Source: Bispira polyomma (taxonomy: Eukaryota). From it: DNA of 64,000 nt. The translations under genes were made by a program, and so were the position numbers. The notes under the pieces were generated by a model. The model ran no database searches. It was not told the DNA's origin and was given only the letters and a program-made list of their open reading frames with translations. Shown piece after piece: positions 24,701 to 57,700 of this stretch (its first letter is position 1; every line of letters begins with the position of its first letter). The DNA is taken from contig OZ287751.1 of NCBI GenBank assembly GCA_965649765.1, positions 43,834,001-43,898,000 of the forward strand. The letters run 5' to 3'.

Positions 24701-27700
24701 TGAGTTAGGTCTCTCACAAAAATTACACTTTTCTATTGTCTTGTATGCTCTGTTTTATGAGCATTATATTTTTCAAACAAAATATAGCTTTCCCTATTTA
24801 TTTGGCGATATTCTTTTTTATCCTTTTATTCATAAATCTACCTTATATGACAATCTTGTGTTTCTGTTGGTGTGTTTTAGTGCCTGGATATGTGAATGAT
24901 GTCAAGATAACAGAGACCGGATCTTACCACTTGAAGGTAGAATGGAAAATGCCTGACCAACCCAATGGAATCATCACAGGATACAGTGTTGGACACAAGA
25001 TATGTAAGTTTGGCATGAAGAACACACAATTTGGGAGTTCTCACCAAAGACCTTTATTATGCACTCCTGTAACACAAATGTTTACTTCCAAAAAAACTAT
25101 ATTCCAGCTGGTGTATTTATCTCTGCATTTCACTCCAAAGCATTTTGTGTCACAAATGATGATAAAATGATGATAAACAATGCATATCAAACTATAAGCT
25201 ATTGTATATGTATTTTAATATGTCAAAATATATAGTCACCAGTACATGTATTTCTGTCTCCCCCCTAACCCCATGATTCTTGTCCTCGTATTACAGTGGG
25301 CAGTACATGTATTTCTGTCTCAACTATCCCCATGATTCTTGTCCTTGTATTACAGTGGGCAGTACATGTATTTCTGTCTCAACTAACCCCATGATTCTTG
25401 TCCTTGTATTACAGTGGGAAGTACATGTATTTCTGTCTCAACTAACACCTGACTCTTTGTCCTCGTATTAGAGTGGTCAGTACATGTATTTCTGTCTTCC
25501 CTGACCTCATGCTTCTTGTCCTCATATTACAGTGGGCAGTACACACAAGGTGAAGGAGGAGTTTGTGGGTATGTCCCTCAGTAAGAAGATCAAGAAATTG
25601 ACGCCAGAGACAGACTATGCAGTCACAGTATGGGCCCTCACAGCAGCAGGACCAGGGGAACATTACGTGGTAGAGGACTCAACAGTGGCTGCCATGCGTA
25701 TGTACCTTTACTCTGGCCGTATATCTGAAGTACTGCCTAGCAAATCTAATTCATCTAAGAGACAGTAAAACTATAGTTGCTTTAAAAGTACTGAGCTACA
25801 ATTAATGACTATTTATTGTTGGTATGAAGTAACATAACATTACATGGTATAGTGGTGACAACTGTGACTGTCATGCATATGTGTGTTTATTCTGGTGTCA
25901 TATTTTAAATACTCGTAGATGGTCGCGCACCCGTCAATTTGATGTATTGTGGGTATTCTTTGGGGTACACATGAAACACTTTGAATGGATGTTTCTGAAG
26001 AATAACAGAACATTCAAAACTTTGTTTACCCCAGAGATTACCCATAATACATCAAATTGACGGCTGCGGGACCATCTACGAAGTGATCCATGGGGAAGTA
26101 GTGGGCTAGTGGTTATAAGTGTCTGCTCTAATGTATCACTAAGCTCTGAGGACAGCGGGATTGAATCCCACTGCTTCCTTTATGTGGGGAAGGTTGCCAA
26201 GTACTTGCCGTATGTTGGTAGTTTCCAGTACAAATACCACTGGTTTCCTCCAAAAAAAAGTGGATTAGTTGGCAATTTAAATAGTTATATTTAGATCCTG
26301 TTTAACAGCAATGTCTGATAAACTAGTGCCTCTTTTGAGGCTATGCTTGAGAATATGAACAAAATTGTATTGTCTAAAGATGTTTGGATGATGGAGATGT
26401 GTTAGTATTTACTGGTACCTCGTCCTGTAACTGGTTCATGTGATATGTGTAGCCCCTGATGTGTTAGTATTTACTGGTACCTCGTCCTGTAACTGGTACC
26501 TCGTCCTGTAACTGGTTGATGTTATATGTGTAGCCCCGGATGAGCCTACTGTATCTGGGATTGAGTACATAGATGACACAGTGAAGGTGACTGTAGACAT
26601 GAGCAAAGAGAAACCAGCCAAAAACCCAGGCAGTGACTTCTATGTGAAATACAGGAAGAAGGGTAAGTTGGATCACTAACTAGTCCTAATGGCCACTAAA
26701 TGACCACATCCTGGTAACAAAAATTAAAGAGATCTGTGGAATTGAGTATTACTTATATATGTTACAGTCAATCTGTGAAACCAGTCATTCTGTGCAATGC
26801 CAAAAAGCACCAGTCATTAGGCAAAATGTCTGAAAATTTTCAGGCATTAGGCGAAATGATTGAAAGTTTTATTTATCACACGTAACACTTGATAAAGTTA
26901 TTCACTATAAATAAATAACGACAGTATAGTCATGGTAGTATTATCACTTTGCCTTTTGTTAGAAAAATTATTTCAACTATTTTTCTATTCTGTAAATGTT
27001 GATCCATAAACTTAAGCCAAAGGTTAATCTTGATCGGTCCTCAAGATTGGTTGAAAAAATAGTCACTTTTGTCATTGATTTATAATCAAAATTATGAAAA
27101 CAGTCTTCATACTTTGAAATGTATACAGAAAAGAGCATATACATTATTTGTTAACATTTTGACTTAAATTGCACACTAGCTGTAAGGCTACAAACTTTGA
27201 TCCAAGTCTTGATACACCTAAAGAGCATGGATCACACTCATGCCAAAAGATGAGCCGAAAATCAGCTTAACTTCTAGTGAATACCAACTTAACCCTTTTG
27301 ATCGCTAGGTTGTCGGCAAGCAGTCGACACCCCAAACAATATTATTAATTTTTCTTCAGTTCCTCGTAATAGGAAATTGTCAGGACAGCAGACTCCTTTG
27401 TTAAAAAAATATACATGAGGCTTGAAGTAGTGTGTGGTGTGTGTTTTATGGACTCCAGCTATCTGTGACCTATTACTGAAGTACTTCCTTCATTTCCCGC
27501 CGGTAGTTTTCTCTTTTTTGCTGATGTTTTATTGGTCCGTTTTGTGAATACCGGTTCCGTTCTTCATCTCGCCCATGTTCGCGTAAACGCCCATCCCCAA
27601 CTTTTCAAATATTACGGAAAACGGCCAATTAATTTTGCAAAAAACGTATCATATAACAACAAATACCATAAAGAAACTATCAAAAATCGATGTTTTTATG

Positions 27701-30700
27701 TGCAAAACTTTGTAAAACATACTAGTTTAAGGTAACTTGGTCATATAACCACCTATAATTTGCGCTTCCTGTGTACACTAACAATGGTGACGTTTTCTCA
27801 CCTGGGAGCACCTATAATTTCCGGTACACAGTTGAAGATAAAACAACAAAATGGGGCTGTTTTTCGCAAGAAATTGTATGAATTTGTTGATTATTTTATA
27901 TCACAGATGAAATAGGTAATTTTTGTGTATTTTATGTCATTTTAAGGTGTTTTTACGGATTAAAACAAAAAAACGAGTTCGCGTAACGGCCCATTCTCGC
28001 AAACGCCCACCCCCAACTTCTTTGAATTTTCGTCGTTTTCGCCCCTGGGCGCTTCCGAGAGCGGAACCGGTAGTTGTCCCAGTTTTGTAACTGTATCTTG
28101 CTATATTTAACCCAGGAGAGGAGGAATGGGAGAAGGTCTATCCAGAGGAGGACAACAACTGGGTCAATGTCACTGACCTGGACAAGGGAGAACTCTATGA
28201 ACTGGTCATTGTAGCCGTAAATGGACATGGGGAAAACACTGAAGAAACAGAGTCAAAACCAGAAGAGTTCACCCCTGGAGGGCCGATTAAAGGTGAGGCT
28301 GTGAGAGAGTTAGGATAACCAATAGAGTAAAACATGGCCATAATGGTGTTTTACCAGTGGTTTAGTGTGGTCTATATTGGTGAATCTAGGAACAATTCTA
28401 GAATTCAGTGGACACTAAACCTCAAGGATAACACCAAACCCTAATTGCAGCGATAGTAGATATGGGGACCTATCCCTAATTCTATGAAATGTAACATGCC
28501 ATAATAGATTATCTTTATTTTAAAGACTACTTTCAATATGGCCGGACCCTGTCCAATGAATCCTAATGTTTGAATGTATTCCTCTAGAAGTGTAAAGAAG
28601 GATGATAATATACAAGTGATGCTGCTTTTCGCATTTCAAACCAAAAGTGAAGGAATATGTATTTCGGCTGGAGTACACTAAATGTGTAGTATTGACTGAG
28701 TGCATGTGATATATGTGTTTCATTAGTAATACACGTGTACCCAGTCAAAAACTTTAAGATACACTTCTGTATACATGTATATCTTTACTGAATTTGAAGA
28801 AATTTAGAGGTTCTTTTGAGTTCTAGTTTGGTTTTGTGGATTTATATCATTTGAAAGTTTCCAGGGCTTGTGGTTTAACATTTTATGTTTTGGAAATATA
28901 AAAAATAGTGCAGTAGAACCTCGGCTATCCAAAGTTCTATTATCCAGATATTCTATTTTACAAGCATCTTCACTCCCCCAATGTGACATTTTCTTACTGT
29001 TTGATGAACGGCTTATTATCTCAACAAAATCTTCCTGTCTCAACAGGTTCAGATAATGGACATTTGTTAATAAAAAATATATTTAATAGAGGTTCTACTG
29101 CAGTAAACAAAGACTGGGTTTAATATTAAGTATTAATGAAAAGGATAAATATGGTAGTATCATATATAGTTCTATAATATGGTAATGTCAGATTTTAAGA
29201 TACAGCCACTTAATGCTATTTTAAGTGAATGTAAAACCTTGCACTTAGCTCCACGTTAATTAACATCTTTTTGTGCAACATTAGTAATGTTTTTGACCGG
29301 TGAGCTATTTTGAAAATGTAAAATGCCTGATCTTCTGACTGTGTGGGTATTCTCCCTCATGTTATGAAGCTCAACTGAATGCATCATATTGAAATAAAAT
29401 ACAGAAAAATGTAAAGATGGTTCAATATATATGGGGTGGTGATATTATCATGCCGTTCAAGATGTTCTTTTGAAACCTAGAACATCATTTTTAGCTTCAG
29501 ATATGAGGGATATGCATTTTTTTAACCAAGTAATTTTGTTTTGCAACGTTGAAAATAACTTCTCCATCTCCATTTTTAAAACAGTTTAACTAATAATAAT
29601 AACTTTCACCATTACTATTTGTATTATAACTGGAATGCTAAAATTTTTAACTTTTGTATTTTTTTCTCAAAATAACATATTATTTCTACTTTAGTAAAAA
29701 AATGCAAGGTATAGAGTGTGTTCTAATACATGTAAATAGGTCATGCAAGGGAACGTTTATGAAGTGACACTAATGAAACGTTTTTTACTAAAGAGAATAG
29801 AATATAAGAGCATATAGATGAAATATTAAGTGAGTCATATTACAGTTCTCTGAGTATTGTCCAGACAAAATAGCCAGTGTCCATAACAGATAGCATTTGA
29901 CCATGGTAAAGAGCATTGGAGTTGTCATTTAGATTTTATATCTCAAAACTCATATTTGATGTATTGTGTACCCTAAACACTCTTGTAACTGAGGGGGCTT
30001 ATGTAGAAGAAGTAATGTATGGGCTGTTATGAGAGGTTGGTTGTAAATTTAAATTTGTAACAATATTTGTGAGTGTGTGGGTAAGAATTTTGACTTTGAA
30101 CCCTTGAAATTCTACATTTGTGGTTGACTATGGACTTCATCTGCATGTATTAAGATAAAATGTGATATTCTTAAAACAAATAGGTAGAAAATTAGTCTTC
30201 TACTAATGCATTGCATTGAAACTCTGATACTAGCCTTTTTCATTCTCAAAGTATAAAAGGCCAAGCTTTGGTAAATCCATATGAGAGTATGAGTGTTAGT
30301 TGAGAGTATGTGATGCTATTGGTTCTATGCATTGTGTGGTCTTGTATCCAGGTGGTCCCATGTCAACAGAAGGGCCAATCATTGGAGAGCGAGTAGGTGG
30401 GTGACACACAGAGCCCCTGCTAATGATATAAACACCTGCTGTATATATATATATATACAAATAACTTCTATTATACCCTCCTCTCTTACACAATACTCTA
30501 ACATCACCCTGGCTTGTAATAACATCATCCATGTTCACATAGTGTTCTCTTTGTTAATTAAAACACTGGAGTTGGGTGCTTTGGTTAGAGGTGATTTCCT
30601 GATCTTGCTTGATTGAAATTAACCATAAAATTAGCACGCCACACTGATGTCTGTGATTAGGTTTCACAAATTTTTTTTACAACATTTACGGATGTCCTGC

Positions 30701-33700
30701 CTTAGAATTCATTGGTATGAAGATCAAGTGTCATAATAGTGTAAATGAAAATCAAATAGAATTGTTAAAATTTGTCATCCATGTTACACAAGACTTCAAC
30801 CAAAGTTTTCTTTGTATTTTGAGGTAAAAACATTGTAAAGCATTCCTGTTGTTTAGAGATGAACTTGACTTTACAGCAACAAACCGGTTTTCTGATGATC
30901 CAGTAAACTAAAAATACCATCTTATTCTGCAGAGCTCTTTTTGAACATAAAAGGCATTGATTGTGCCGAACATTAACATCAATCAATGTCACATTAACTT
31001 GTTTGTTTGACAGTTGTTAATACCCTGTTGTGAATATATTTTACACCACTAAAAATGCTTTACAGTTATAAAAACCAAATGCTTCTATATACAACACATC
31101 CCTTGTTTTTGACTTTAAGCTTATTTTGCTACATGTTAAAGAATGCAGCTAGCCATGCAGTTAATTGTTATTACATTGTTAATCTGTGTAATCCATGATT
31201 TATGTACATATTCTAATAGGAGAAACGGGTGATGATTTAGGTGGTAAGTATGGCATCTGAAATTTGGAGACTGATACTGAATGATTCATACTGAGTACTT
31301 ACTTTGAGCTTTACTCATCACTTTCACTCGTTACTTTTAATACTAAATGATTCATACTAAGTACTTACTATGAGCTTTACTGCTCACTTTCACTCATTAC
31401 TTTTAATACTGAATGATTCATACTGGGTACTTACTGTGAGCTTTACTGCTCACTTTCACTTATTACTTTTAATACTGACTGATTCATACTGAGTACTTAC
31501 TTTGAGCTTTACTCATCACTTTCACTCATTACTTTTAATACTGAATGATTTATACTGAGTACTTACTATGAGCTTTACTTATCACTTTCACTCGTTACTT
31601 TTAATACTGAATGATTCATATTGAGTACTTATTGTGAGCTTTACTCATCACTTTCACTCATTACTTTTAATACTGAATGATTTATACTGAGTACTTACTA
31701 TGAGCTTTACTTATCACTTTCACTCATTACTTTTAATACTGAATGATTCATATTGAGTACTTATTGTGAGCTTTACTCATCACTTTCACTCATTACTTTT
31801 AATACTAAATGATTCATACTAAGTACTTACTATGAGCTTTACTGCTCACTTTCACTCATTACTTTTAATACTGAATGATTCATACTGAGTACTTACTTTG
31901 AGCTTTACTCATCACTTTCACTCATTACTTTTAATACTGAATGATTTATACTGAGTACTTACTATGAGCTTTACTTATCACTTTCACTCATTACTTTTAA
32001 TACTGAATGATTCATATTGAGTACTTATTGTGAGCTTTACTCATCACTTTCACTCATTACTTTTAATACTGAATGATTCATATTGAGTACTTATTGTGAG
32101 CTTTACTTATCACTTTCACTCATTACTTTTAATACTGAATGATTTATACTGAGTACTTACTATGAGCTTTACTTATCACTTTCACTCATTACTTTTATTA
32201 CTGAATGATTCATATTGAGTACTTACTTTGAGCTTTACTCATCACTTTCACTCATTACTTTTAATACTGAATGATTTATACTGAGTACTTATTGTGAGCT
32301 TTACTCATCACTTTCACTCATTACTTTTAATACTGAATGATTCATATTGAGTACTTATTGTGAGCTTTACTCATCACTTTCATTCATTACTTTTAATACT
32401 GAATGATTTATACTGAGTACTTACTATGAGCTTTACTTATCACTTTCACTCATTACTTTTAATACTGAATGATTCATATTGAGTACTTATTGTGAGCTTT
32501 ACTCATCACTTTCACTCATTACTTTTAATACTGAATGATTCATAATGAGTACTTATTGTGAGCTTTACTCATCACTTTCACTCATTACTTTTAATACTGA
32601 ATAATTTATACTGTATCTTGTCAGAGCTTTACTCCTCACCCTCACTCATTACTTTTATTATAATGTTTAAACTCGAGTATAAATTTAGATGCTTTATACA
32701 ACTAAAAGGATCATGAACAATTGAGTTTTGGCATACAATAAAAACCAATTAACAACAAAGTTTCACTTTCTCTCCCAATTACAGCAAAAACATCTTTATA
32801 ACAGAGCACTGATAATGCTTTGTTACCAATAGTATGTGATTATATGGCATATTGCTTAGGATATATCCTTGTGTCACATGTAAAGAAAGAAATGTAATGG
32901 TATGGCTTCTATTAAATTATAACTATAACTGGGTCAGTTACAGTTCTTTCGATAAATATCCCATTTTTGGCAAAAGTTTCCATTTTAGCTGTGACCAGCT
33001 AGGGATATATATATATATGAAATATAGCATGATGCTAAATCTACATGTACACATTCTCACTAGGTAAACACAGTTCCAACCAATTGCTTTGCAATGCTTA
33101 GCTAAATGACTACAATAGCCACAATGTCTCCATTAATAACCAGTTTTTGCCAGTTTCAGAGGTTTGTATTTCTCTAATACACATTTCTATCTATGTTTTA
33201 TATACATATTATACATTGTCTTTGTGTTCTTATCTCTCTCTCTCTCTCTGACACCTGTCACACCCAGTATATCAAGGTGAGACTGCATCCCATGACTTGC
33301 CTTCTGTGCTTCAGTCCGGCACTAGCTCCACTGCAAGCCATTTTACGTTTAGGCACTCACCTCCGCTCTCTTTTGTGCAGACTGTAAAGTTTACACAACC
33401 GCATGTTACAAAAGCTATTGCCATTGATGTCGGGAGTACATCGCAAGATTTACCGCCCAAAGCCAGCTTTGTCAGTGTCGCTAAATCAGCTGAAGTACAA
33501 ACAGAAACTTTTGAAAACCTCAAAAACCTATTAAGTTCCACTGTTGATTTAAAATATGAAGGTCTTCATAGTACTTTGGCAAGTACTAAGGAGATAAATG
33601 AGCTTACTGTTGGCAGCAGTGCTGGAAGGATTGACACCACAATCAGAGATATGAAAACTAGCTGGAAGAGGTGGGATTCTCAGGTGATCAGTAACAGCAA

Positions 33701-36700
33701 AGAGTTCAGCAAAAGTAGTGGCAAAACTGTTGAGATTAATACTTTGCAATTGAACAACACTACAGCTGTGAGTGAACAAGAGAAGATTAATAATACAGAG
33801 AATACAGCTATAACAAGAGATAGTAATTGGGGGAGCAAAGATTACTCCAGTAGTAGTAATAGACTGATTGATAATACAGAGAAAACAGCTATAACAAGAG
33901 ATAGTAATTGGGAGAACAAAGATTACTCCAGTACTAGTAATGGACTGATTGATAAAACAGACAATACAGCCATAACAAAATATAGTAATTGGGAGAGCAA
34001 AGATTACTCCAGTAGTAGTAATGGACTGATTGATAATACAGAGAAAACAGCTATAACAAGAGATAGTAATTGGGAGAACAAAGATTACTCCAGTACTAGT
34101 AATGGACTGATTGATAATACAGATAACACAGCCATAACAAAAGATAGTAATTGGGAGAGCAAAGATTACTCCAGTAGTAGTAATGGACTGATTGATAATA
34201 CAGATAACACAGCCATAACAAAATATAGTAATTGGGGGAGCAAAGATTACTTCATTTCTAGTAATGGACTGATTGAAAATACAGATAACACAGCCATAAC
34301 AAAAGATAGTAATTGGGAGAACAAAGAGTACTCCAGTACTAGTAATGGACTGATTGATAAAACAGACAATACAGCCATAACAAAAGATAGTAATTGGGAG
34401 AACAAAGATTACTCCAGTAGTAGTAATGGACTGATTGATAATACAGAGAAAACAGCTATAACAAGAGATAGTAATTGGGAGAACAAAGATTACTCCAGTA
34501 CTAGTAATGGACTGATTGATAAAACAGACAATACAGCCATAACAAAATATAGTAATTGGGAGAGCAAAGATTACTCCAGTAGTAGTAATGGACTGATTGA
34601 TAATACAGAGAAAACAGCTATAACAAGAGATAGTAATTGGGAGAACAAAGATTACTCCAGTACTAGTAATGGACTGATTGATAAAACAGACAATACAGCC
34701 ATAACAAAAGATAGTAATTGGGAGAACAAAGATTACTCCAGTAGTAGTAATGGACTGATTGATAAAACAGACAATACAGCCATAACAAAAGATAGAATTT
34801 GGGAGAACAAACAATACTCTAGTAGTAGTAATGGACTGATTGAAGATGCAGTTAAAACTAAGAAGAATACTTTTGAGACAGCTGATAGTATAGTCAAAAC
34901 TACTGAGACAGAATGGGGAGGGAAGAACTTTACTGTTAGTAATAAAGATCACAAGAGTAGAATTAATACTATGGAAACAATGGAGATGATAAATAACTCA
35001 ACTGGATCTAATCAAGATAGAGGGACAGATGATACACCTCAAACTATAGAAGGTATTCTGGGCTTCAAAGATTCAGCAGTTACCACCAGTGAAGGAGCAA
35101 TCGATGGTAAAACAAACACCATGTGGGAAAAGAATGAGTCCATCATAAGAAGCCGTAGTAAAGGGATTAATAGTACAGCCAAATATAACCAAAGAACTTT
35201 GGCAATGGATAAGTCTACTGCTCATAGTAATGACAGAGTAACCAGTCATATCGTGAGAACTATGAGAAGTGCTGTTACTACTAGTGAGACAAATAAAAGT
35301 TCAGCTAAAACTTTAGACAGTAGTACTTCCATTAATAACATGAGCATAAATTCTAATAGCAACAATGCCAGCACAACAACTTTAACTATGGAACCAATTA
35401 AGAGTAACCACTCATTAGCTACAGATATTAAAGGCACTAAAGACAGCACAGATGTTACTGATAAAAGTATATTTAGTATAAGAAAGCGTAATACAAAGTC
35501 TCAAATGTTTAATGCAGATGATACTACTACTGTTAACACTGGTATTATGACTAATGATAGGACTACTGACTCGAATACGGAAAGTTTAGCAATATACCAG
35601 ACTGGTTATAAAACAACTGATGATCTCACAACTGACGGGGAGTTTAGTGGTTTAGAAGTAACAGGCCATTCTAGTAATAGTAAATTTAACAGAATGACCG
35701 ACATAACTACTAATAGCCATGATGAATTACATGAAACTACTTACTCTGCACCAAAAAACAGTTTTAATTACAATACAGATATGCATGATGACAAAGTAAC
35801 TCTCTCCACCAGTGATGTAAAAGAAAGTTTTAACCCTGTGCTTCATTTAAGCACAAATGTGGACAATATGAAAGTGGAACAATCTGCAATGCCATCAGAT
35901 CACAGTAGCGGGGGTAATATAAGAACTGGTAGTACTAGTAAGAGTACCACTAAGGGTATGTGGTCTTATAATGATAGACTAGAAACATTGGCAGAAGGTG
36001 ACACTGTGAAAATAGACAGTGATAACACTGGTGTAACATCCACTTTAGAAACTTTGAATTCAGATGTCAGTACTGGTTTTTCGAAGATCCCAAACATTGC
36101 CACTATGGTAAGAGATACTGATGAGCTACACGTTTTTACAAGTGGAAATCTAAAGCCTACTCTGGAGTTTCTGACATTGGAGAATGATGATATTTTAGGT
36201 GAAAATATGCCGGGTGAATTATCCAGTGAAAGTACTGAGAAAACTACAAACTCAGAAGAAGACACATTTACTACCGAGATGGCTAGTAAGGGCAATAATT
36301 CCATAGTAAAAACAGTAGGGAATGTTAAGGTCATTACAAAAGATGCAACAGAACCTTCTATAATAATACCTAGTTCTTTACATGATGATCAGACTACAGA
36401 TATTACTAAGAAATTTGGTAGGTATGATTTTATGGTCAAAGATGACACTTCTACTGGTTCTGTGGATATGTCTGACAGTACTGAAGGTTTAAATAAAGAT
36501 ACAGATTTGGTTAGAAAAGTGGGTATTGTCAGTGCTAAAACTGATACGACTTCTGCCAGTATGGAAACAGTAAGAGGGAGCACTAAATCCATGCACAGAG
36601 GTAATTTGGATGGTCAAATGTATGGTATCAGTAATATTCCAAATAGGCAGATAAAAACAACAAATACTTACGCAGCAGATGCATTTCAAAGCAAACTCAG

Positions 36701-39700
36701 TGACTCTACTGACATCCCTAAATCAGATAGTGCTGCCTTATTGGCTGATGGAAATACTAGATTCCAAACTGGTGATACCACAAAAAGTTACTTATTTCAT
36801 AAAAGTACTGAAACCACTAAGGAGTTGAGTACAAGTGTGGACTCTGTTGTACCTAATGGTGATGCAGAGACAAGTACAATGTCTGCTAAAGTGTATTACA
36901 ACAATGTCAAATCAAGTGAAGGTACAGAACCAGTAGCAACAAGTGAAACTATAAATAGCTGGTCTGGTAAGAGTAGTAACAGTATCATAACATTGGGTGG
37001 AACCAGTAATTCCGTATCAGAAGATTACATTGTCACTACCAGTTTCATTGTAAGTACTGATGCCAAAGAACCACTTGACTCTGATGGAGAAGTTACTTAT
37101 AGTGGTGCTGTTATCCAACCTCGTAGTACACCAAGGTTTAGTAGAAATACAGAGGCTAAATTATCACATGCTACTCTTGAACCAGCCACTTCTACTAATA
37201 ATATCTTAATGGCACGGGCATCTCAGAGTACTGACCACTTTATGACCAATGAACATATCAATAGTGGAAGTATGACAAGTATTAGCAAAGGAAAGGATGA
37301 TGCTATACGTGGTACAATTACTGTGAGTATGATGTCAGTAGTCCCAGATGGTACTGACATTACAGTAAGTAGTGGTATCAATACAGTTGATACTAATATC
37401 AAGAGTACTGGTATAAGTACTACAAACACTAATATTAGCACTATGAACCTAGGTGATATTGATGTTACAGAAAGTGATGGTATCAATACAGTTAATACTG
37501 ATTTCAAAAGTACTGATATAAGTACTGGAAACAATGATATCAGCACTATTGTCCCAGGTAATATTGATGTTACAGGAAGTAGTATTATCAATATAGTTGA
37601 TACTGATATCAGGAGTACTGATATAAGTACTGGAGACACTGATATGACCACTATAGACCTAGGTGATATTGATGTTACAGAAAGTATTGGTATCAATACT
37701 GTTCGTAGTGATTTCAGGAGTGCTGGTATAAGTACTGAAAACACTGATATCACCACTAGGAACCTAGATGGTATTGATGGTTTGGAAAGTAGTGGTATCA
37801 ATACAGTTGATACTGATATCAGGAGTACTGTTAAAAGTACTGTAAACACTGCCATGGAAGCAAGTGATATTGATATCAGCACTATTGACGTAGGTAATGT
37901 TGAGGTTGGAAATACAGATACTATTATTACAGAAAGAGGTAATACTAAAATAGGTGTTATGACTATTGAAAGCACTGAGATGACTGCAGTGAAAGCTGTT
38001 GATACCACAGGGACTGTTGATATTGAAAGCCCTGAAACTGGTACTACAGAAACTGATAGTAGAAGTTTCGATGTCAGTACTACTAAAAGTGGCTATATTG
38101 ATGCTAGAGATACAATGGGTAGAAAAACAGAAAACATGGATATTAATCTTAAAAGTACTGAGGGTATAGAATCTGGTAGAGTTTTAACGAGAATAACAAC
38201 AGAACAAACTGCTGGTGTTGATATTGGAAGTACAAATATTAGAGACAGAGATGGCATCCATATAACAACAGCTTCTGGTATCACAAAAACTGGTAGTGGC
38301 TATGATCAAAGTACTTTCTTTAGTGATTCTACAGTAGCAGTGAAATCTGCAATTGCAGATAGTGTTAGTATTGATGGTTTAATTGGTGGGAGTGCTATTA
38401 TTAGCAAAAGTGGAACATCTACCTCCAGTGCAGGAAGTAACACAGAATATATACTGACTAACCATATTGGTGATATGGTTACTGAAGATAATCTAAATCC
38501 AACAGTAAATACTTACCACAGGGTAGGAGATAGTGCTGATCATACAAACAGTGAGGTCATAAATTATATGACTACTGGAGATACTGTGAGAATAAGCAAT
38601 GGTACTGAAATTACAGGTACATTTAATACAAGTACAAAAAAATCAGGTTCAAATATTAGAAATGATACTATTCTTCAGGATTTGATTCAAAGCGTAGATC
38701 TAATGAGTACCAGTGCATCTGTTGATACAATAGGTGACATGAGTGGCAGCTTTACAACTGGAAGAACTAATGAGTTATTGCGAAATATTGATGTCACAGT
38801 TGGAGAAGATTCTACAAAAGTAGACATTGATATCACTCGTGATAGAACATCTGGTCTAATTGACAAGTTACAAGAAAGTACTTATTCCATGACAGCAAGG
38901 TATAGAAGTAAAACAGACACTAAGATCACTGAAACCATGAGTCAGTTTGGTACAAGCACTATCTCTATGGTAACAAATAATGCTGCCAGTAGAGGCATGG
39001 ACACCAAAACTGACAGAACGGGTTGGACAGTAAATGATGCTACTAAATCTTTGGTAACAGGTGGTACTGTCAATACAGTTGGTGACATTCATCACAATAG
39101 TACAGATATTGAATACACTGAAAATGCTACTACTTGGTGGCTAGAAGACCTAGATTTCTCAGTAGCAGGTGATAACACTGATGTATATTCTGGTACATCT
39201 GCAGGTACAACCAGGGCATTAGATGTCACTAGTGGATCTAGAAAGTCAAGTGACGTGGGTGTCACAGACATTGTTTATAGAATCAGAAATACTACCAGGG
39301 AGAGTAGCGTAATTATTACAGATGATCTGGTCACAGACAGTACTGACACTGCACCTCAAAGTGAATATCAACTGCTAGTGAGTAGTACAGATGTCATGTT
39401 AAAAGGTCATAGATTTAGTACCAATACTGACAACGCTGAAGTAACATATAGTAGTGACTCCATGGTTCTAGATACCATGCCTGCATTTGATAGTGAAGTG
39501 ACAAGTGATAGCAGACTACCAAGTGGTAGTACAGAGAGTCTAGTAGCAGGTGATACTGTCAGTACAAATACTGTTAATACAAATAGTGCAAGAGTGTACA
39601 CTGATATATTAACAACGACAAGCCTGACTGATGATTACACAGTTACCAAATCTACAGAAGTAACAGTCACTGACAGAGTCACATCAGCAAGTTCTTTATT

Positions 39701-42700
39701 AGTACATGACACTGTAACTGTAAAAGATCTGGACATAAGCAATAGTGTAAGTGATGATTTAGGGAAATTGTCAACAAAGAACCATACAACAATACCTCAT
39801 GTTGTTTTAACAGTTTCTACTGAATCAGATAAATCAAAAGTGAGTAATAACAACTTAATTGATGCCACTGAAGACCCCCAAAATGTCACCTGGGTCCTGA
39901 TGTGTGAGAAACTGATGTCATTGAGAGCTCAATTGTTTGCACTAAGCAATAGAGTTTGTGGGCAGACTGGGGATGTATCTGATAGAAACTGTTCAGAGAC
40001 AACATCAGTAGATAGTGTCAATGTGAGTGCCTCAGAAAGCATCGTAAAACAAACAGGTTATGTGCTTCAGATTATACATACTGAACAACCCATGGCCACT
40101 GGTGAAATGACTGATGATACTACAATACATCATGGAATAGAAGATGATAGAAACCTAACAGCGGATGGGGTGTTTGAGGCTAGTACTGATATCATTTCTA
40201 ACTATGTCACTAGTGCTTTAGACACAAAAAGCGATATCGATATTTCTAGTCCTACATTTTCTGACAATTATATCAATGAAGCAACAGAAATCGAATACAG
40301 CACCCCAGTTTCTAGTCCTGAATTTGAAGATAGTTCTTTTACTGTAGAAACTGAAATCAGTCGAAGTACTACTGGTAAGTTAGATGAAACCCCAGTTGGT
40401 GTTTCTCTAGTTGAAAGGGGCGATACAGCCATTGCTGATTCTATTTTTAGAATTGGACCGCTTATTGTTACTACCACAGATCTTGGGGATACGACTGACA
40501 TTGCTACTTCTGAGGTAGGGGACAGCTTTGTGTCATTATCTAACAAAGATATATACAACACAATAACTGTCAACAGAGATACTAATCTCATTACTGCAAC
40601 ACCAGTGGTAAGAGACAAACCTAAAATAATTACTGCTGATGTAGGAGACAACTCAGTGACTATGACTTTAACCAACCCTAGCACAACAAAATATGAGGAC
40701 AGTCCTCTTAGTGAAACTCAAAATGTAGAGGAAGGACTAAGTACCATACATACCAACTTAAAAGTCAAGCACATGTCTACTGCTATAAATTTAAGCAATA
40801 TTACGGAGTCTTTTTCCCCCAGACTAGAAAACACGTACCAGACCACAAGCCCAAAGTTACAGAACAACACAATCAGTACTGACATAGCCTTAGAAAACAG
40901 TTCATTGGACAACTGGTTTGAATTAAACTCAACAACAATTTCTAAGGCACAAAATGATTCTGCCAATGTTACTTTGTATTTGAAAGACCATTATGTCACA
41001 AGTTCTTTGCTAGAAACCATCAGTGTCAAATCAGGAAACTATGATACTTCTACAGTTCCTCAGGAAGGACACTCGTACATCACAGCTTCTGAAAAGAAAA
41101 CAGTGGATGTCAAAAAAAGTTCAACAAATACGGAAATAAATGCTGGATCTCCTTACTCCAGTCCTGGAACAAGACAGCACACAGTTGTTGAGTCTAAAAT
41201 AGTGCATTATTTAACATCTGTTGGAGCTCAAGTAGAAAACGTCACCACTGAAAGTATAGACTCAGAAAATAAAACCATCAGTCCATTACATTGGGAGAAC
41301 AACATAACTACTATAAGTCCACAGTCAGGGGACAATATCACAGTGATAACCTTTCTTGTAGAACAAAACCTCACCACAATTATGACACAATTAGAAAATA
41401 GCTTTGCTGCTATTGCTGTAGAGTTGAAAGAAAGGTTTGCTGACATGTCATCTCAGTTAAATGATAATTTCACCACCATCACTTCAAACTTAAAGGATAA
41501 TTTCACAGCTATATCCTCACATTTAGAGGACAATCTAACACCTATCTCAGTGTATTTAGAGAAAAGCTTTTCCAATATAACATCACAGTTAGCGGATAAC
41601 TTTGCCACTATTATATCACAGGTACAGAAAACCTATGTCAATAATAATTTACAGCCAGAAGACATTTTTACCACTGTTTCATCAAACGTAGATGTCTTGG
41701 TTGTCATTAGTTCGTTTTTAGAAGACAACTTTGTTAATATCACATCTCAGTTGGAGAACAACTTCACAACAGTAATGTCACAACTAGGTACAAACCTTAC
41801 AGTGGTCAGATCTGAGTCATATGACAGCCAAGGAGTTACCGCATTAGTGGACACAGTTACAAACGCTATACCATCAAGTTCACAGGACATCTTTGTTGAT
41901 TCAGATTCAAACAATACCACTACATCCGCGGAGAATATAGTATCAAGTGGTGCATTGACCTTAGAGCAGACAAAGCCAAAGGCTAATGATTCTACCCTTG
42001 ATTATACATTATCAAGTATAATTCAAGAATCAGCTACTACCAATGATGGATCTACCGTTGAAATTGATTATATATCAAACAGGAAAAGCCCTAAACTACT
42101 AAACAACATCTTTACGCCAATTTATGACAAGTCAGAGTATAACTCTGCAGACCTTATGTCAACTTCACAAACATTTAGAAGTCATACTGCTGGCTCAAAT
42201 TCAGCAATACATATTAGCAAAAATGAAACACCGGAACCATTGTCATCTGTTACACCAGAGGCTCTTGGTAATAACAAATTTGAAAAGCAGACCACAAGTG
42301 CAATACCAGAAAGTGAAAGTACTGAGCACAATAAACTAAGAACTATTTCTTTGAGTAGTACATCACTGGGGAAAGAATATCCTATAAATAATATATCACT
42401 TGTGAGTAGTAAGACTGAGGACAAATTCAATGATTTTCAAACTGTATATACAAATTACTCTGATTACTCAGACAATACTGTTGCTGTAAGAGTCAACACG
42501 ACAGAAAGTTACAAGTCTAGTACATTTATTTCAACTGAATCCTCCAGCAAAAGTTTTTTGACACCAGATGCTGAAATATTCAGTCCAATGGATCAAAGGA
42601 ATATTTCTTTTGAAGGTGAAACATCTACCTTTCAGACAAACAGTAATAGAAACATTGCATCCAATATAACAACTAGTTACAATTCTACTAAAAGTTCAGA

Positions 42701-45700
42701 CATTAGCCAGAATGTCACATATAAACCCTCTACTGCTCCTGTGACAAAAACCTCTGATCGCAAATCTGCCTTGGGTAGTGTATTTACCATGTCATTTGAT
42801 GATAATGATCAAGCAACAAGTGTAGCCTATGTAAAAGAAAGCAGTGACAAGTGGAAGACACCAATGGATGATCAGAGTGCTAAAACTATGTCCAAAACCA
42901 GTTTACCTCCAATGAGTCAAACCATGGAAGGGAAGTTTCAAAGTACTCACTCTGTCAGTGGTACAGAAATTCCATCCGCAAGGTCATCAGGGAGCAACAC
43001 AAGCCCTGCTCCCATCGTGGCTGTTCATATTATTAAAGAAATACATGATCAAAAAGTGACAGGAGCAAATATGGTTAGATTAGTGGACACGCAGGCTTAT
43101 CCTACTAGAAATGGGATAGATTCCTCTACTGATGACTACAAAAATACATCTTATAAGACTGACAGTGGAAGTTCAACAGAACATGAAACTACTGTTATTG
43201 ATAGAGATGTCTTTAAAACTACAGAGAATTTAGAAACGGTAACAAGCAGACTGATTGAGAATTCAGGTGTTGATGCCAAAATTACTGCAACATACAAAAC
43301 CAGTGCAGATAAATTCAGATTAACTTATCAAGAAAACAGCATATCTGCTGAACAAAGTGTAACTGGATATATTGGGGAAAACGCAAGCTCAAACATGCCT
43401 GTAACTGTGTTGAATATTTCAAAAAGGTTGGACTTATCTGATGACAGCTTTTCCAATTCAACTAGAACAGTACTTGACAGTGCAGATGATGATGTACATG
43501 TGAATTCACCCACAGGTCATATCCTTTTCTCAGAACCTACCAGTTTGCAAACATCTAGGTCTACAGGCACATTAGACTTCAGTTTTGAGAATAAGTCCTC
43601 CATGGAACCTATGAATACTTCATTTCTTGATGTGAAAACTAACAGCTCAAGTGTTAGTGAACCACTCATTATTACAACGTCTTCAAATCCTAACAGCACG
43701 ATAAATCACATTGATTCAGAGTGGAAAAATCAACGAGGTAATGACAATACAGAAAAGTACAGTACTCTTCAGCAGTTGCTTTCAACATCATCAGTAGTAT
43801 CACAGGCCACTGAAGATGTTTTGGACTTAAAGATTTCTAAAATAGTTAATACAGAGGGAACAGTATTAGATCATTCTCCTGGAGAGACTTTAAAAAAGAA
43901 CCCAGATTCTCCGCCGTCATCTACAATAGAATATTTGTCAGCTTTAGTATCTTCTTCTACATCTATGTCCCAATCCACTGAAGATATTTTGTATGCAAAC
44001 AATATGAACACCACAGAAACTACTGAATTGTTGGAGTCTTCTTCAGCGGAATCTACAATACATGGAAAATCACATTCTTCTCCAATGACTGACCATATGA
44101 ATTCCCCAAAGTCAGTGGAAGCTACATCTGCATTATATCCTTCAAAATATGCATCAAAGAATACAGAAGAGTCCTCTGAAGCAGAAACTACAGGACTTGA
44201 TAGTTTGCCTGCAATTTCATCTCTATCTAGTGCATCAGACTCTCAGTACTTGTCTCAAAAGACAGTTGACAACAACAATGTTGTGACATCAGCTTTACCG
44301 AGAAAGGTAACGTCAAATGTTCCTTCTAAAGTTAAAACTTACATGGATACACAGCATATGGTAGATGACACAACAACTTTCTCAGTGGATCCTACAACAA
44401 AAGGATTCAAGCTCCTTGAAAAGAAATTCCTGTCAAACATGGGTGAAGCAGCTCTTTCAACTTTATCTACTATATTTACTACACAAATCACTGACATGGA
44501 TATGGCAGAAACAGGTGTAAACTCTCAAGAAAACATCTCCACAGTTTCCTCCATAAACGAAACATTCATGGGAGGAAACCTACTTCAGAAATTAAAAGAT
44601 CTTAGTAATAATACCAAAGTGAACCAAAGTAATATACACAGTGTGTCGACAGCTGTTCCTATAAGTGACTCAAATTCAAAGCAAAAGTCTGCACACATCT
44701 TACAGGTTTGTATAGACAGGTATAAACAGAGGAAGCGATTTGAACAACGAAAACAGAAATCCGCAGAAAAGGTCACTCAAAAATGGTTGTCTTTACCAAA
44801 TGTGTTATCAGTACAAACTACGACCGTGTCTTATGATCATACTGAAGAGGATTCCACAGAACATGCAGCTGTTCATGTGCTGGTTGATACCATGGACCAA
44901 AACCTGGATGGTAATAGCTTTCTCAGACCCTGCACATAAACTCAGCACCAGAATATATGTAAAGCATGGGCTGGTATGCTCGAAATAGTGCACTCGTGTT
45001 TAAACTTCATACTCAACTTAAATATAGGCCATGTGGAAATCCTTGTACATTGAAATGACCTGTACTTGTGACCATTCGTTTTAATAGAGCTTTTAACACT
45101 GACTTCAAATATCAAGTCAGGTTTTAGTTATGTTTACCCATGTGTCCATGATTCCAGATTTAAGTAAGAATTTTAGTCGAGTATACCTTCGAGAATACAG
45201 CCCTAGATGTTCACCAAACATATGAATAGTACACACATTGGGCATGATCTTATGTCAAGGCTTGTGTATGTAATTAAGTATCGACTCTCTGTCTTTTATA
45301 TTTAAAATTAAATTACACCCGGGGATTTTTCCTCTGAACAAAATGGCCACTAATGTCAAATAGTGCACACTTATATAAAGTATTGAAAACAACCACATAT
45401 GTATACGTATAACTGTTGGGGTGTAATTTAAATAGGTTAGAGCCCTTTGTATGTGTTCTCTTTGAAAATAGAACACAGTTAATGACTCAGTCTCTTCAGA
45501 ATGTTGGTAACTGTACTCTATTGTCAAAGGGAGACCACTAACATGGACCCTAACTTATACTTAGTATAGCATTTTTATAGATGCAAATTTTATTACTTGC
45601 ATGAATCAAGGTTTTCGACCAGGGCATGTCATTATAATAATCTTGCTCATTACTTATATCAATGTGGATAATGTCAGCACAGTAATATAATAAAAAATAG

Positions 45701-48700
45701 GTTTTTGTATGTTTTGGAAATAAAATAACATAACACATCATTTTTTCTTCTTCTGAAATGAACAGCACTTCTCTTTAAAACATTGACATAACTATTTTTC
45801 ACGAGTGAAATTATGGCATGTGCAACACCGTAGATTAGATAATATAAAACATTAATTTCAGGGATGTACAAAATGAACAGCACTGAATATGTATGATGAA
45901 TTCTGAGAAGGTTTTCTGAGAACATCCAAAATATCAAGAAATAATCATATTTTTATATTGTGAAAGCACTTTCAAGTAAAAATCTGGAACTAACTTTTGG
46001 ATTGTGTGGAAAGTAGTAGGGTAAAGGGAAAAAATTGGGTAAACTAAATGTAACTGTGTGGTGATTGATGGTGAAAGCTGTTCACTAATAATGACACCTG
46101 TATTGAAACTGAATATAATAATGTTTAACGAGTTGCTTCTAATATTACAAGCAGATACAGATACAAAATGTAGTTGGTCCCACAAACAAAGGGGGCTTTT
46201 AACCAGCTTTCCTTGTGCCTTAATTGCTTTGAATAACAATAGTCTGCATTTTTTCTGTTGGTTTTCTTAATTTATTTGCTTTATTCTATTAAACCAAAGA
46301 TGCTGTGTTTCTTTAATTTCGCATTTAAGTATTTTTTCTTTGGGTTATGTCTTGTATCAGTATGTTAGTGATATGTATTCAAAACAGGTCTAAAAAGAGG
46401 TAAGTCCTATAGTTACTAAGACATCTTCTAATCTTACATAAGTAATGTATTAATTATATTCCAGAAGATTAAAATTTCTTAAACTTATAATGTGTTAGAA
46501 ATAGGTCACAGTATTATTTGTATTCATAGTTAAATTTACTCTCTGTGCATTTATCTACCTTTGTCTGGTATTCAAAGTACTGATTCACTTTATTGTCGCT
46601 GCTAAAAGATGGCCAACTAGCACCAGTAACTGCCATTCCCCTAACTGTACCAGGAAATGCTTGGGCTAGGGTTGAACCCAAGTCTTCTGCATTTCTAATT
46701 AAGTGTGTTGCCCATTACGCCACATTGGCATAGTTTTCTCATCTCTTATTTACAGTTTGCATTGGGTTTTAACGATATGATGATTTAAGACAAAATTTAA
46801 TGTCAATTTTCTTTATGGGCTGATTTGAGTTTTGAAAATATAATCATTAAAATTCTAAACTTCATGCAAACTTTGTGTTGTGTCTGTATAGTTCATTGTT
46901 TTGTAATTCACTTAAAGTTATAGGGAATCCGTGAGATTGTTGTGTAAACCAGCTGTCTTAACCTGTTTGGCCTTGTTATATATCAATTTACTGCATTGGT
47001 CAATGTTTACAGACAAATCCCAGGATAATAAACAAATAAAAATAGCCTGGTTTGGTGACTTTTTGACCTTTAAACCTCCACATTGTGGTCTGTGAAAATT
47101 GTGGAGACTTGTATATTGTTAGACAAGTCCAAGTTTGAAGACTTTTGTGTTGATGGTTTTGTTATTATGTTATAGTCTATAATTTTTAAAGGTATTTTTT
47201 ATATAAACATATTAGTATACTTATTCTACTCTGCTTAACCTTACATCCATTAAATAGTGCTAGTCAAATTTCAAGAGCTGCCATTCTATGAATATTTTCA
47301 TCTTTTTAAAAGTAATAAATTTTATTACATAGTTATATTATTTAGACCAAGAGTCCACCAATGAGGATCAAGTTAAAGATGTATAATTTCAGAGACAACA
47401 TTAAGCTTGTGTTTTTTATACACACAACCTCAACATACATAACCATTTTGTCTCTGTTGTCAGAATGGAGTAAAGAAGTAAAATATCCATTTGGACAATA
47501 AAAATGTTATGCAATATTAATAAGAAATGTATTATGTTCATATGATATCAAACTCTAGGGACTATAAGCTTTGGGTTAGACGTCTAAAAGTAAATCAAAT
47601 TCACAGAAAACATATCTTTTACCTCTTGTATCTAGATTAAAACCAATCTACAGATATTTCTATTGTATGGCCTTCTTAAAAGCAGTAATTTGCTTTTTGC
47701 ATGGCTCAGACAAATATACAAATGCTAAGGTGTTTTTTAAAAAGACCCTTGTTGGTTTGTTGATGTAGCTATATATTTAAAAGACAAAACCCAGGCAACA
47801 CTTGATAAACAAGTGTCAGTATCTGAGAACTGCTTACATTGGACATCTGGATATACAACAGCTCAACACCTTCATCATGGACACATCATGAATATTAATA
47901 CAAGTCGACTAATACTCACTTTACTAGCCCATATATTATTTTAAAAGATTGATACTTTGCATATTACAAATACTTATTGAAGGTAACATATGTAATAGAT
48001 TTCTAGATATATATAGTTGGTACTTTGCATCTGTATAAAGCACTAGTGTTCTTACTTTATGGTTTAGACTGATCTCGAAGTAATCTAGTTTAAGGTTACC
48101 TCTTAAATTGAGCATTATCTCCTCTATTCAACTGTTTCTTTTAATGGTGGATGAAAAAGAAACCCATCATCTGAACCAAACTTAATTACATTTAATTGTC
48201 ATTATTAAAAACCTGTTATAAAAGGAAATAATTAATTCTTTGAACAACAAAACTGGTGGTTTTGATCCCAGTCTCAGTTGTTTAAAAATGCAACCTTTGT
48301 AGTTAACAACAATATGGGCAGCTAAGTGTGAGTTTAAGGTTAGTAGGGTGACTACATACAGTGTAGTGTGTGAGTAGCCATCACCCTCTGTAGTATTAGA
48401 AGATGCTAGCAGTCCATTAACACTGTGTTTGTAGGAGATCCTTATCTCTGGTCAGTTTACATTAGCAGTTTCCCTACCAGCTTTGTGTATCTTTTTACCA
48501 GTTTGTCCATTCTTTATAGTGCAAAGGAAACCTTACTGTATTCCACCCAGTAGTAACCGCTCAGTAGCAAACACTACTTTGGGAGTTTTCTGGTATTTTT
48601 AAGCAATGAATATTATGTTCAAAACATACTATTCTGTTTCCAGTAATAAAACTTTGTCTTATGTGTTAAAATAGTTGTTCCCTACTATTAAGTATTACAC

Positions 48701-54700: not shown

Positions 54701-57700
54701 ATTAGTTATAACATTAGTACTTTTGCTTTATATTTTAATGGATACACGTTGTGAACTTCTGGATATTTAGAGCACAAGGAACCAAAATGTAGTAGCCACT
54801 TATTTGTAATTTACCAAATACAGAAAAGTATGGGTCTGAATCAAGAGAAAATTAATTATCATAAATCAATTTCTTGTGGTAACAAAAAACACACTAAGTT
54901 TGGGTCTAAGTCTTAACTTAAAGTCTTAATTTTGGTGTTTAATTTTGGCCGAAAAGTTGAAGATTTTGGTCTTAGTCCCAGTGACAATAAGAAAATATCT
55001 TTATTTAGTGTTAACTTGCTCTTAATATTAAGACTAACAGCAGGCAGTCTTGAATATTTTAGACATAAAAGGCTTTCACAGACCTTATTAGGTGACAAAC
55101 GTCAGATATGTGCGTATAGTACAACTTCTATTGTATAAATATATAATTATTTATGAACTCTCCAAAATTTATGTTTTCTATTGTTTTACACTAAAATAGC
55201 TGTTCTATTTGATAAACCTTCTATGATCCTAGCTAAATCTTGCTCTTCCAACATGTTTGGACAATAGAGTTTCTAGATCTGTTTCTCCTTACATTTCTGT
55301 CATTGTATATGTTGTTACAGTGATGAGCCACGTAGCTATGCTGCCCCTCCTAAAAACCTGCCACCAAATAACATAGACGATGAGCAGCCACTAGGGGGCA
55401 GTGAGTCCGACAGTATGGCAGAGTATGAGGACACAGACCCAACTAAGTTCAATGAGGACGGATCCTTTATAGGTAAGTGTATAGTGAGTGATAATAGGTG
55501 TATATAAACACACAGACCCCACTAAGTTCAATGAGGACGGATCTTTTATAGGTAAGTGTGTACTGGGTGATAATAGGTGTATATAAACACACAGACCCCA
55601 CTAAGTTTAATGAGAGCCGATCCTTTATAGGTAATTAAGTGTGTATAGTGAGTGATAATAGGTGTATATAAACACACAAACCCCACTAAGTTTAATGAGA
55701 GCTGATCCTTTATAGGTAAGTGTGTATAGTGAGTGATAATAAACACAGAGACCCCACTAAGTTTAATGAGGACTGATCCTTTATAAGTAAGTGTATACTG
55801 GGTGATAATATATAGGTGTGTACAAACACACAGACCCCACAAAGTTCAATGAGGACGGATCCTTTATAGGTAAGTGTATACTGGGTGATAATAGGTGTAT
55901 ATAAGCACACAGACCCCACTAAGTTTAATGAGGATGGATCTTTTATAGGTAAGAACATGTGTATAATTGGTGATAATAGGTGTATATAAACACACAGACC
56001 CCACTAAGTTTAATGAGGACGGATCTTTTATAGGTAAGTGTGTATAGTGAGTGATAATAGGTGTATATAAACACACAGACCCCACTAAGTTTAATGAGGA
56101 TGGATCCTTTATAGGTAAGTGTGTATAGTAGTGATAATATGTATATATAAACACACAGACCACACTAAGTTTAATAAGGACAGCTCCTTTATAGGTAAGT
56201 GTGTATAGTGAGTGATAATAGGTGCATATAAACACACAGACCCCACTAAGTTTAATAAGGACAGCTCCTTTATAGGTAAGTGTCTATAGCGAGTGATAAT
56301 AGGTGTATATAAACACACAGACCCCACTAAGTTCAATGAGGACTGCTCCTTTATAGGTAAGTGTGTATAGTGAGTGATAATAGGTGTATATAAACACACA
56401 GACCCCACCAAGTTTAATGAAGAAGCGCCTTTATAAGTAAGTGTATACTGGGTGATAATAGGTGTATATAAGCACACAGACCCACTAAGTTTAATAAGGA
56501 AGAATCCTTTATAGGTAAGTGTATACTGGGTGATAATAGGTGTACATAAACACACAGACCCCACTAATTTCAATGATGACAAATCCTTTATAGGTAAGTG
56601 TGATTATAGGTAAGCTGACCGTTTCCACCCCTATAAGTTGGCGGCTAGCAGCCCACTACATTTCTTACTCCCAGAGCCTATGTCTGTCGGAAAGCAGTCA
56701 ACACCCCTCAACCTATGCCCCATCTCTCCAATACATTCAGTAGATTTCGCGTCATCCTGTTGACAAACAAAGAAATAAGCCAACCAAACAAAGTATATAA
56801 ATTAGAAAATTTTATAAACTCTATAAAAACCTATATAATTCTTTTTATAAACTCTGTAAAAACCTATATAATTCTTTATAAAATAATAATGTTTAGAATA
56901 TTTTGTCACCATGTGTAAATGTTGTCTGTGTACATCCTAAAATATTGAAATTATGTAACAACAGTTGTTGTGGTACAAAGGTGTTATAGTTCTATAGTAT
57001 TGAGAGAAAAGTATATACGTCATGTGTAGAATGTGTATCTCTATGGAAATAATAACAACAGGAACTCCTTGAGGCAGATAATAAATATATAACATTTAGA
57101 TGTACATGTATATATATGTTACAGGCCAAATTAAAATCCAGTCAGATTTTAAATCCACCTAGGCGAGATTAAAAGTCTAATCTCGCCTAGGCGGAATTAA
57201 AATTTCAAGGTTTGTCTAATAGAATTTATTCTTGCCTAGGCGGATTTAAAATCTGCTTAGACCAAACTAAAATGTTGATTTTGTCTAGGCGAGATTAAAA
57301 TAAGGGGAATTAAAATGTCACATTGAGGCAAATTTTTATTATTTCATTCATGTATGCAGTAAAAGTATGGATAACAACCTTAAAATTTAACCTATTTTAT
57401 TTCTTTATAAAGAACTTTCCATTCATGGTTCAAAACATTAATTCATTCATGGAATATAGTAATTGCATTAATTATTAACATCATTTCTTTATAAAGCACT
57501 TTCATTCATGGTTTAAAACATTAATTCAGACACTACCAAGTGCTACCAAATCATTCCTGAGCACATATAAAAAAAAAAAGTGCACCAGGAAAGTCTTGAA
57601 GGATTACCAGTATGGAATTTTTGAAAATGCATACTCACACAGTGTAACTAATGTTTGTATTTATAGGACTGTATGGAGGCAAGAGAGATTCAACCATTCA

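Follow-up and report, generated by a model that had tools for sequence, protein, structure and literature searches.

L1-family molecules are short-range adhesion and axon-guidance receptors, and one of them, neurofascin, can carry a membrane-proximal PAT segment of a couple of hundred residues that is rich in Pro, Ala and Thr. Here we analyse a 64,000-nucleotide stretch of the Bispira polyomma genome (GenBank assembly GCA_965649765.1, contig OZ287751.1, positions 43,834,001 to 43,898,000 of the forward strand; ‘the window’, in whose own numbering all positions are given), in which a gene of the L1 type probably contains a single giant internal exon of 11,643 nt, placed between its last fibronectin type III (fn3 or FNIII) domain and its transmembrane (TM) helix.

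Several described systems come close to such an arrangement. In membrane-tethered mucins, a giant single exon encodes the Ser/Thr-rich, fast-evolving extracellular region, with its variable-number tandem repeats, that sits beside the TM anchor. Within the L1 family, exons 26-29 of Nfasc encode the FN5 and PAT domains (PMC5595909), and the ‘mucin+’ isoform of neurofascin is a neuronal one that localises to nodes of Ranvier and to axon initial segments (PMC2121080). Leech Tractin has six immunoglobulin (Ig) and four FNIII domains, then an acidic region, a long repetitive insert, a TM segment and an ankyrin-binding tail; its insert, made up of a 64-aa acidic block and 12 Pro/Gly-rich collagen-like repeats, accounts for about a quarter of the 200-kD protein, and after cleavage in the third FNIII domain the fragment remaining in the membrane would consist mostly of that insert (PMC2139938). 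Giant ankyrin exons, which arose independently in flies and vertebrates, insert thousands of largely unstructured residues into their proteins (PMC6660793).

Results

A giant open frame within an L1-type gene

On the forward strand of the window, a single open frame extends from 33252 to 44936, that is 3,895 codons from stop to stop, and is closed by a stop codon at 44937-44939; listed as an ORF, the same frame spans 33297-44939 and encodes 3,880 aa. Flanking intron DNA contains 7.4% stop codons per codon, which gives 3,895 open codons a log10 probability of about -130, so that a chance origin in this DNA is excluded; the remaining two sense frames across the same interval hold 268 and 566 stops. 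The exon proper (33268-44910; splice junctions are written here with a slash) begins at an acceptor, CCCAG/TA, that follows a long pyrimidine (C/T) tract, and ends at a donor, G/GTAATA at 44910/44911, whose hexamer is also present at 15515 and 19282. Its 11,643 nt are a multiple of three (3,881 codons) and both of its ends are in phase 1, as are the neighbouring junctions at the fn3 exon donor (28292) and the TM exon acceptor (49538). An earlier reading of this DNA from its letters alone (the sequence-only reading) had described an uninterrupted ORF with phase-1 acceptor and donor, a frame-preserving cassette of this size, the shared donor hexamer and a stop shortly after the donor; every one of these is borne out, the stop lying nine codons downstream. 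The resulting read-through tail (44911-44939, nine codons and the stop) would be used if the donor were ignored.

On its domain content, the host of this frame is a cell adhesion molecule (CAM) of the L1 family (neuroglian/neurofascin type), an assignment that follows from Pfam I-set, fn3 and Bravo_FIGEY matches together with a typical TM exon. Exons were taken one by one in the profile and protein searches. Ig I-set and Ig_3 matches fall on exon ORFs at 11535-11810, 14411-14686 and 15963-16214 (the window may miss the 5' end of the gene), and fn3 matches on those at 19817-20083, 24709-25167 and 28091-28315; each of the latter, taken alone, falls short of the gathering score, since every domain is divided between two exons. 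A Bravo_FIGEY match on 55277-55504 (E 1.3e-9; 39.5 bits against a cut-off of 23.8) marks the cytoplasmic exon at 55321-55472, with its ankyrin-binding FIG(Q)Y region. Multiple N-terminal Ig domains, FnIII domains downstream of them, a single TM segment and an ankyrin-binding tail, the features by which L1 membership is recognised, are all found. The giant frame lies between the last fn3 (FnIII-5) exon (28116-28292; phase 1 at both ends, donor G/GTGAGG) and the TM exon (49538-49663; phase 1-1), which encodes L1-type TM and juxtamembrane sequence; these two exons are respectively 83% and 93% identical at the amino acid level to their counterparts in the relative described below.

An orthologous exon in a distant relative

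The first 300 aa of the giant exon, used as query in a protein search, matched one protein (P0001), whose cluster also contained a 3,941-aa product (P0014); the ORF that encodes the latter lies 5 kb beyond on the same 1.2-Mb contig (ENA ERZ22147071, ctg31040l; pieces L001, L005, L006 and L007). This locus carries an orthologous L1-type gene with the same exon order. Between the two species the fn3 exons are 67-84% identical at the amino acid level, with a proportion of synonymous differences (pS) of 0.5-0.84 and a ratio of non-synonymous to synonymous change (omega) of 0.07-0.18; by these pS values synonymous sites are nearly saturated, and the two species are thus distant from one another.

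In the relative, the last fn3 exon and two mini-exons are followed by an open exon of 11,781 nt (3,927 codons), again phase 1-1, which is to be regarded as an orthologue and not a paralogue, since the giant exon is present as a single copy in the 1.04-Gb genome of B. polyomma. The acceptor AG is conserved (CCCAG/TATATCAAGGTGAG in the window, CTCAG/TATACAAAGGTGAG in the relative, both behind a pyrimidine tract), and the donor, GATG/GTAATAGCTT, is identical in both, including the first ten bases of the intron. Similarity between the proteins sets in at the first codon past the acceptor, where neither species has an initiator codon or a signal-peptide-like segment, and ends exactly at the donor; beyond this point there are nine codons to a stop in the window and 24 unrelated codons in the relative. 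The sequence-only reading had named the orthologous intron as the place to look for a similarly long ORF, and the exon found there occupies the same position; acceptor, donor, phase and approximate length (3,881 against 3,927 codons) all agree with the in-frame placement between the last fn3 exon and the TM segment that it had proposed.

A sensitive comparison of the 5-kb intron upstream of the giant exon revealed the two mini-exons as the only other conserved blocks. Mini-exon A (30352-30396) is 45 nt long and encodes a Gly/Pro linker, the exon and both its splice sites being conserved with 83% nucleotide identity over 71 nt; mini-exon B (31220-31243) is 24 nt long, with AG/GAGAAAC...G/GTAAGTA conserved and an alignment score of 49 as against 26 or less for shuffled sequences. 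From the last fn3 domain to the TM segment there is thus a conserved chain of phase 1-1 exons, of 45 nt, 24 nt, 11,643 nt and about 250 nt. Splice sites, compatible phase and conservation in an orthologue, the genomic marks of an internal cassette, are all found for the giant exon.

Conserved islands within the giant exon

Within the exon, five islands have remained under purifying selection between the window and the relative, with omega values of 0.13-0.37. Island 1 comprises the N-terminal ~70 aa (33268-33482; 67% amino acid identity); its pS of 0.23 is far below the 0.5-0.84 of the fn3 exons (binomial P 5e-8 to 5e-5), which indicates constraint at the nucleotide level. No stable RNA fold was found at the 5' end of the exon (z -0.09), so that a fold does not explain this synonymous constraint. 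Island 2 (39864-40094) is a 77-aa core with three conserved Cys residues and a predicted helix (omega 0.135, synonymous divergence, dS, about 1.5), for which AlphaFold2 gives one helix at a predicted local distance difference test (pLDDT) score of about 70, low confidence elsewhere and an overall pLDDT of 47.

Island 3 (41370-41864; 57% amino acid identity, omega 0.17) consists of about 13 units of a hendecad repeat, F-x-x-I-x-S-x-L-x-D-N, an 11-residue register that occurs nowhere else in the exon of either species. AlphaFold2 models it as two long helices (pLDDT 65-80), and we predict a hendecad α-helical segment of about 150 aa, within which most N-x-T sites have kept their positions between the two species. 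A complex prediction with two copies of the island scored 0.00 and speaks neither for nor against pairing. Island 4 is a 27-aa block (42996-43076; 59% amino acid identity, omega 0.26), and island 5 the C-terminal ~180 aa, ending at the donor (44367-44910; 39-42% amino acid identity, E 4e-27, omega 0.37). The stalk proposed in the sequence-only reading is not featureless, since it bears these five islands, with the predicted helical hendecad segment among them.

Searches beyond the relative yielded little. Pfam profiles gave nothing credible on the whole exon, its islands or the relative's product, with RHH_3 and Apolipoprotein falling under their cut-offs; the ESM Atlas held no usable match; and a sequence search of the PDB gave none for island 2 and only weak, non-significant coiled-coil matches for island 3. 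No protein of comparable length was matched in the protein searches, and the search with the full-length giant-exon product returned no match, its word sampling also missing the relative's own 3,941-aa product. Five weak matches of the first 1,200 aa, which paired the 27-aa array described below at 20-22% identity with proteins including LRR-like and other repeat proteins, were judged spurious.

Composition and tandem repeats of the insert

Across the open frame, Ser makes up 14.7% of residues, Thr 14.6%, Asp 8.2%, Asn 7.7%, Pro about 2.4% and Gly 4.6%; there are five Cys residues in the whole frame, four of them within the exon, and the net charge of the insert is about -217. Although ~85% of the exon cannot be aligned between the two species, its composition is nearly identical in both, the respective values for the window and the relative being 29% and 27% for Ser+Thr, 2.3% and 3.2% for Pro, 14% and 15% for Asp+Glu, 26% and 28% for hydrophobic residues, and four and five Cys residues. 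N-x-S/T sequons number 69, slightly fewer than the 85 +/- 8 of shuffled sequences of the same composition and not enriched; the description of the product as rich in Ser, Thr, Asp and Asn and poor in Cys thus stands, and that of ‘many’ sequons does not. The term ‘mucin-like’ suits the position of the insert and its mode of evolution but not its composition, which is strongly acidic and lacks the very high Ser+Thr content, with abundant Pro in tandem repeats, of a mucin (PTS) domain.

Tandem arrays identified by Tandem Repeats Finder (TRF) make up ~13% of the window's giant exon, so that its DNA is indeed non-repetitive in bulk, as the sequence-only reading held, save for two arrays. One has 13 units of 27 aa with one Trp per unit (33785-34843; 81-nt period, 91% matches), is lineage-specific and is absent from the relative; the other, also lineage-specific, has 4.7 units of 35 aa (37360-37851; 105 nt x 4.7). 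The relative has arrays of its own, of 15 aa x 41 and with a 153-nt unit, and it is largely through such species-specific arrays that the spacing between islands differs. The 45-nt x 41 array (L006 18302-20159; 15-aa units), absent from the window, explains the ~620 aa by which islands 3 and 4 are further apart in the relative. Two minus-strand ORFs, at 33549-34952 (467 aa) and 37223-38008 (261 aa), overlie the window's two arrays and are by-products of them; an Imm26 match on antisense sequence was dismissed, its score being summed over repeats with no single passing stretch.

Downstream exons and neighbouring features

Between the giant exon and the TM exon lies the remaining member of the conserved chain, a Ser/Thr-rich, phase 1-1 exon that we call exon X (49220 or 49229 to 49474), whose donor, ACTG/GTAAGG, is the same in the relative, and which is also open and similar in the contig of a third species (L004). 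Because exon X intervenes, the expected junction is 44910 to 49220/49229, and not 44910 directly to 49538 as the sequence-only reading had proposed; nor is a 12-nt micro-exon that it placed at 46388 conserved in the relative. In the window, exon X is separated from the TM exon by an intron of 63 nt (49475-49537) that is open in frame, such that its retention would add 21 aa; in the relative this intron measures about 410 nt and contains stops. Ser/Thr-rich open sequence also lies just upstream of the homologous TM segment in genomic contigs of several other animals, and a Ser/Thr-rich juxtamembrane stalk seems, from these sequences, to be common in this group of L1 genes, with the giant exon as its extreme form. 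In the intron that runs from the giant exon to exon X, an 84-nt block (48411-48494) shows 81% identity between the window and the relative, with a 1-nt indel and no shared open frame; in each species it precedes exon X by about 0.73-0.75 kb, and it may be an intronic regulatory or splicing element.

Elsewhere in the host gene, the third fn3 region contains an R-G-K-R furin-type site (about 23090-23101) that is conserved in the relative; no conserved furin-type site was found inside the giant exon when the two species were compared. Two similar Ig-domain exon ORFs on the gene's strand (553-819 and 5702-5920), ~5 kb apart and sharing an LHFAN... motif, might be either tandem duplicates or alternative exons of the mutually exclusive kind. 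Two intronic repeats were also noted: a ~145-nt tandem repeat at 6289-7126, with overlapping ORFs in all three sense frames, and a 30-nt satellite at 17948-19084, within the intron that separates the Ig part from the fn3 part, which has a 10-aa unit and is open in several frames, the resulting ORFs of 167-207 aa being probably non-coding.

In the relative, a 1.2-kb stretch (L001 9626-10803) duplicates the intron end and the first ~830 nt of the giant exon at 98.5% identity, although ~100 nt are missing near the acceptor; the copy has been inserted into a 147-nt satellite that lies between fn3 exons. This stretch is the source of the 298-aa ORF P0001 and looks like a recent segmental duplicate and pseudo-exon. 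The intron downstream of the relative's TM exon holds, on the minus strand, a 1,566-aa retrotransposon ORF (L007 14733-19433; RVT_1, RNase H, integrase and SCAN-like gag), as a result of which the relative's cytoplasmic exon falls outside the loci that were fetched.

Discussion

Synthesising these comparisons, we think it likely that the giant ORF is a genuine, internal, frame-preserving protein-coding exon of an L1-family gene, and that it has been maintained by selection. A number of points weigh against this view. The evidence is carried by two species only, with no third copy of the giant exon found in two metagenome scans (using islands 2 and 1) or in the protein searches; GC content at third codon positions (GC3) is 28%, near intron composition, as compared with 50% in the fn3 exons; an internal exon as long as 11.6 kb, in the company of exons of 24-270 nt, is an unusual case for exon definition; and the exon is known here from genomic DNA sequence alone. 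A composition that is atypical of mucins also leaves the picture of an extended brush uncertain.

Very long exons are more often terminal than internal, and the giant ORF might accordingly serve in the main as a 3'-terminal exon, the donor being ignored and the product being a secreted protein in which a giant acidic tail follows the Ig/fn3 part, and the TM and ankyrin-binding parts are missing. The in-frame stop nine codons past the donor would suit this, as would the AATAAA or ATTAAA motifs that occur 368-1,349 nt downstream; poly(A)-like hexamers are, however, expected by chance in DNA of 65% A+T, the donor together with its first ten intron bases is the same in both species, protein similarity stops exactly at this donor, and the tail behind it has kept neither length nor sequence (9 against 24 codons). 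We therefore regard a mainly terminal exon as unlikely. A read-through secreted form, as the sequence-only reading envisaged, might possibly be made alongside the cassette form as a minor product; the comparison lends it no support, the two tails being different in length and sequence.

Nested genes are common in long introns, and the tie between the giant ORF and the fn3 exons is drawn from the genome sequence only, both of which would accommodate an independent gene that lies on the same strand, has a separate promoter and 5' exon(s), and encodes a secreted or intracellular low-complexity protein. Conservation, however, starts at a conserved AG acceptor and brings with it no initiator or signal peptide; the 5-kb intron upstream is conserved solely at two phase-1 mini-exons that continue the fn3 frame; and both ends of the exon match the host junctions in phase in both species, all of which makes a nested gene very improbable. 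It is hardly credible, finally, that the ORF is an unexpressed relic, or an artefact of assembly or composition whose frame is open merely because its sequence is purine-rich and of low complexity. Low complexity, a GC3 near intron level and the antisense ORFs of 261-467 aa that arise on the arrays would fit such an origin, but the arrays make up no more than 13% of the exon, both remaining sense frames are full of stops (268 and 566), and the comparative data, with a similarly long open exon in a species near synonymous saturation and islands at omega 0.13-0.37, come close to refuting it. Conserved ends, phase and mini-exons form, as far as sequence can tell, the pattern predicted for an internal L1 cassette, which neither a nested gene nor a relic would readily explain.

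If the giant ORF is indeed such a cassette, it would be spliced between the fn3 and TM parts of the L1 mRNA, and its inclusion would add about 3,880 residues beside the membrane; the product would be a membrane protein of type I, with a total length of roughly 5,000 aa (an estimate, as the window does not hold the whole gene). We suggest that the insert may act as a very long, hydrated, probably glycosylated and largely disordered acidic ‘spacer’ or ‘brush’, which would either keep the Ig/fn3 head well away from its own membrane or shield it sterically; at most, with the chain fully extended, the reach would be on the micron scale. A receptor for short-range homophilic adhesion would thereby be turned into a long-reach or anti-adhesive, matrix-like form. 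Within the insert, the conserved islands may serve as docking, assembly or processing sites, with only composition and openness being kept in the ~85% that is fast-evolving and of low complexity.

Inclusion of the exon is probably regulated, because skipping it keeps the frame and because its first ~200 nt, coincident with island 1, are under the strong synonymous constraint expected of splicing control; these may themselves be the controlling sequence. More tentatively, and with considerable doubt, we speculate that the locus holds a regulated, conserved, extracellular giant exon that switches the receptor between a short adhesive form and a long-reach or anti-adhesive one; a counterpart of the giant-exon ankyrins, in which the hendecad helix and the Cys island could act as modules for assembly or docking.

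A conserved juxtamembrane insert of 3,900 residues would be by far the largest among known L1-family inserts and, if true, raises the question of how an Ig-CAM sets intermembrane distance, masks adhesion or builds pericellular matrix. It would also provide a natural example of a disordered region whose length, composition and openness are kept by selection as its sequence turns over, with the few conserved islands as obvious targets for experiments. Gene predictors are likely to skip or split an exon of this kind.

No report or database protein describing an L1-type CAM with an insert of this size was found in limited searches, and the known inserts of the family are, as the sequence-only reading held for PAT and Tractin, far smaller; their compositions differ as well. 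Neurofascin NF186/NF180 offers the same setting, an L1-family gene in which alternatively spliced, membrane-proximal cassettes supply a Ser/Thr-rich stretch close to the last fn3 domain; the insert described here is set apart from PAT by its length of about 3,880 residues, its single exon, its low Pro content (2.3%), its strongly acidic character and its helical and Cys-bearing islands. Tractin shares with it an acidic insert in the same position before the TM segment, and the R-G-K-R site in the third fn3 region of the window gene resembles in position the cleavage in the third FNIII domain described for L1-type proteins and Tractin (PMC2139938). The present insert is, by comparison, about eight times longer, mostly non-repetitive and poor in Pro and Gly, with no PG/YG repeat array of the Tractin type in the exon, where TRF finds only the 27-aa and 35-aa arrays.

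Membrane-tethered mucins likewise place a giant, Ser/Thr-rich and fast-evolving exon with tandem repeats beside a TM anchor; here, in contrast, Pfam detects no SEA or EGF module, Ser+Thr amounts to 27-29% and Pro to 2-3%, and the carrier is an Ig/fn3 protein with an ankyrin-binding tail. The giant ankyrins (440-kD ankyrin-B, 480-kD ankyrin-G and Drosophila Ank2-L/XL) resemble our proposal in having a single giant exon and an extended polypeptide, and in belonging to the same L1-ankyrin membrane complex; theirs is cytoplasmic and lies in the ankyrin partner, whereas the one proposed here would be extracellular and lie in the L1-type receptor, and there is no sequence relationship between the two. 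By analogy, then, the giant ankyrin exons are the closest counterpart in principle, and the FN5/PAT exons of neurofascin the closest within the family.

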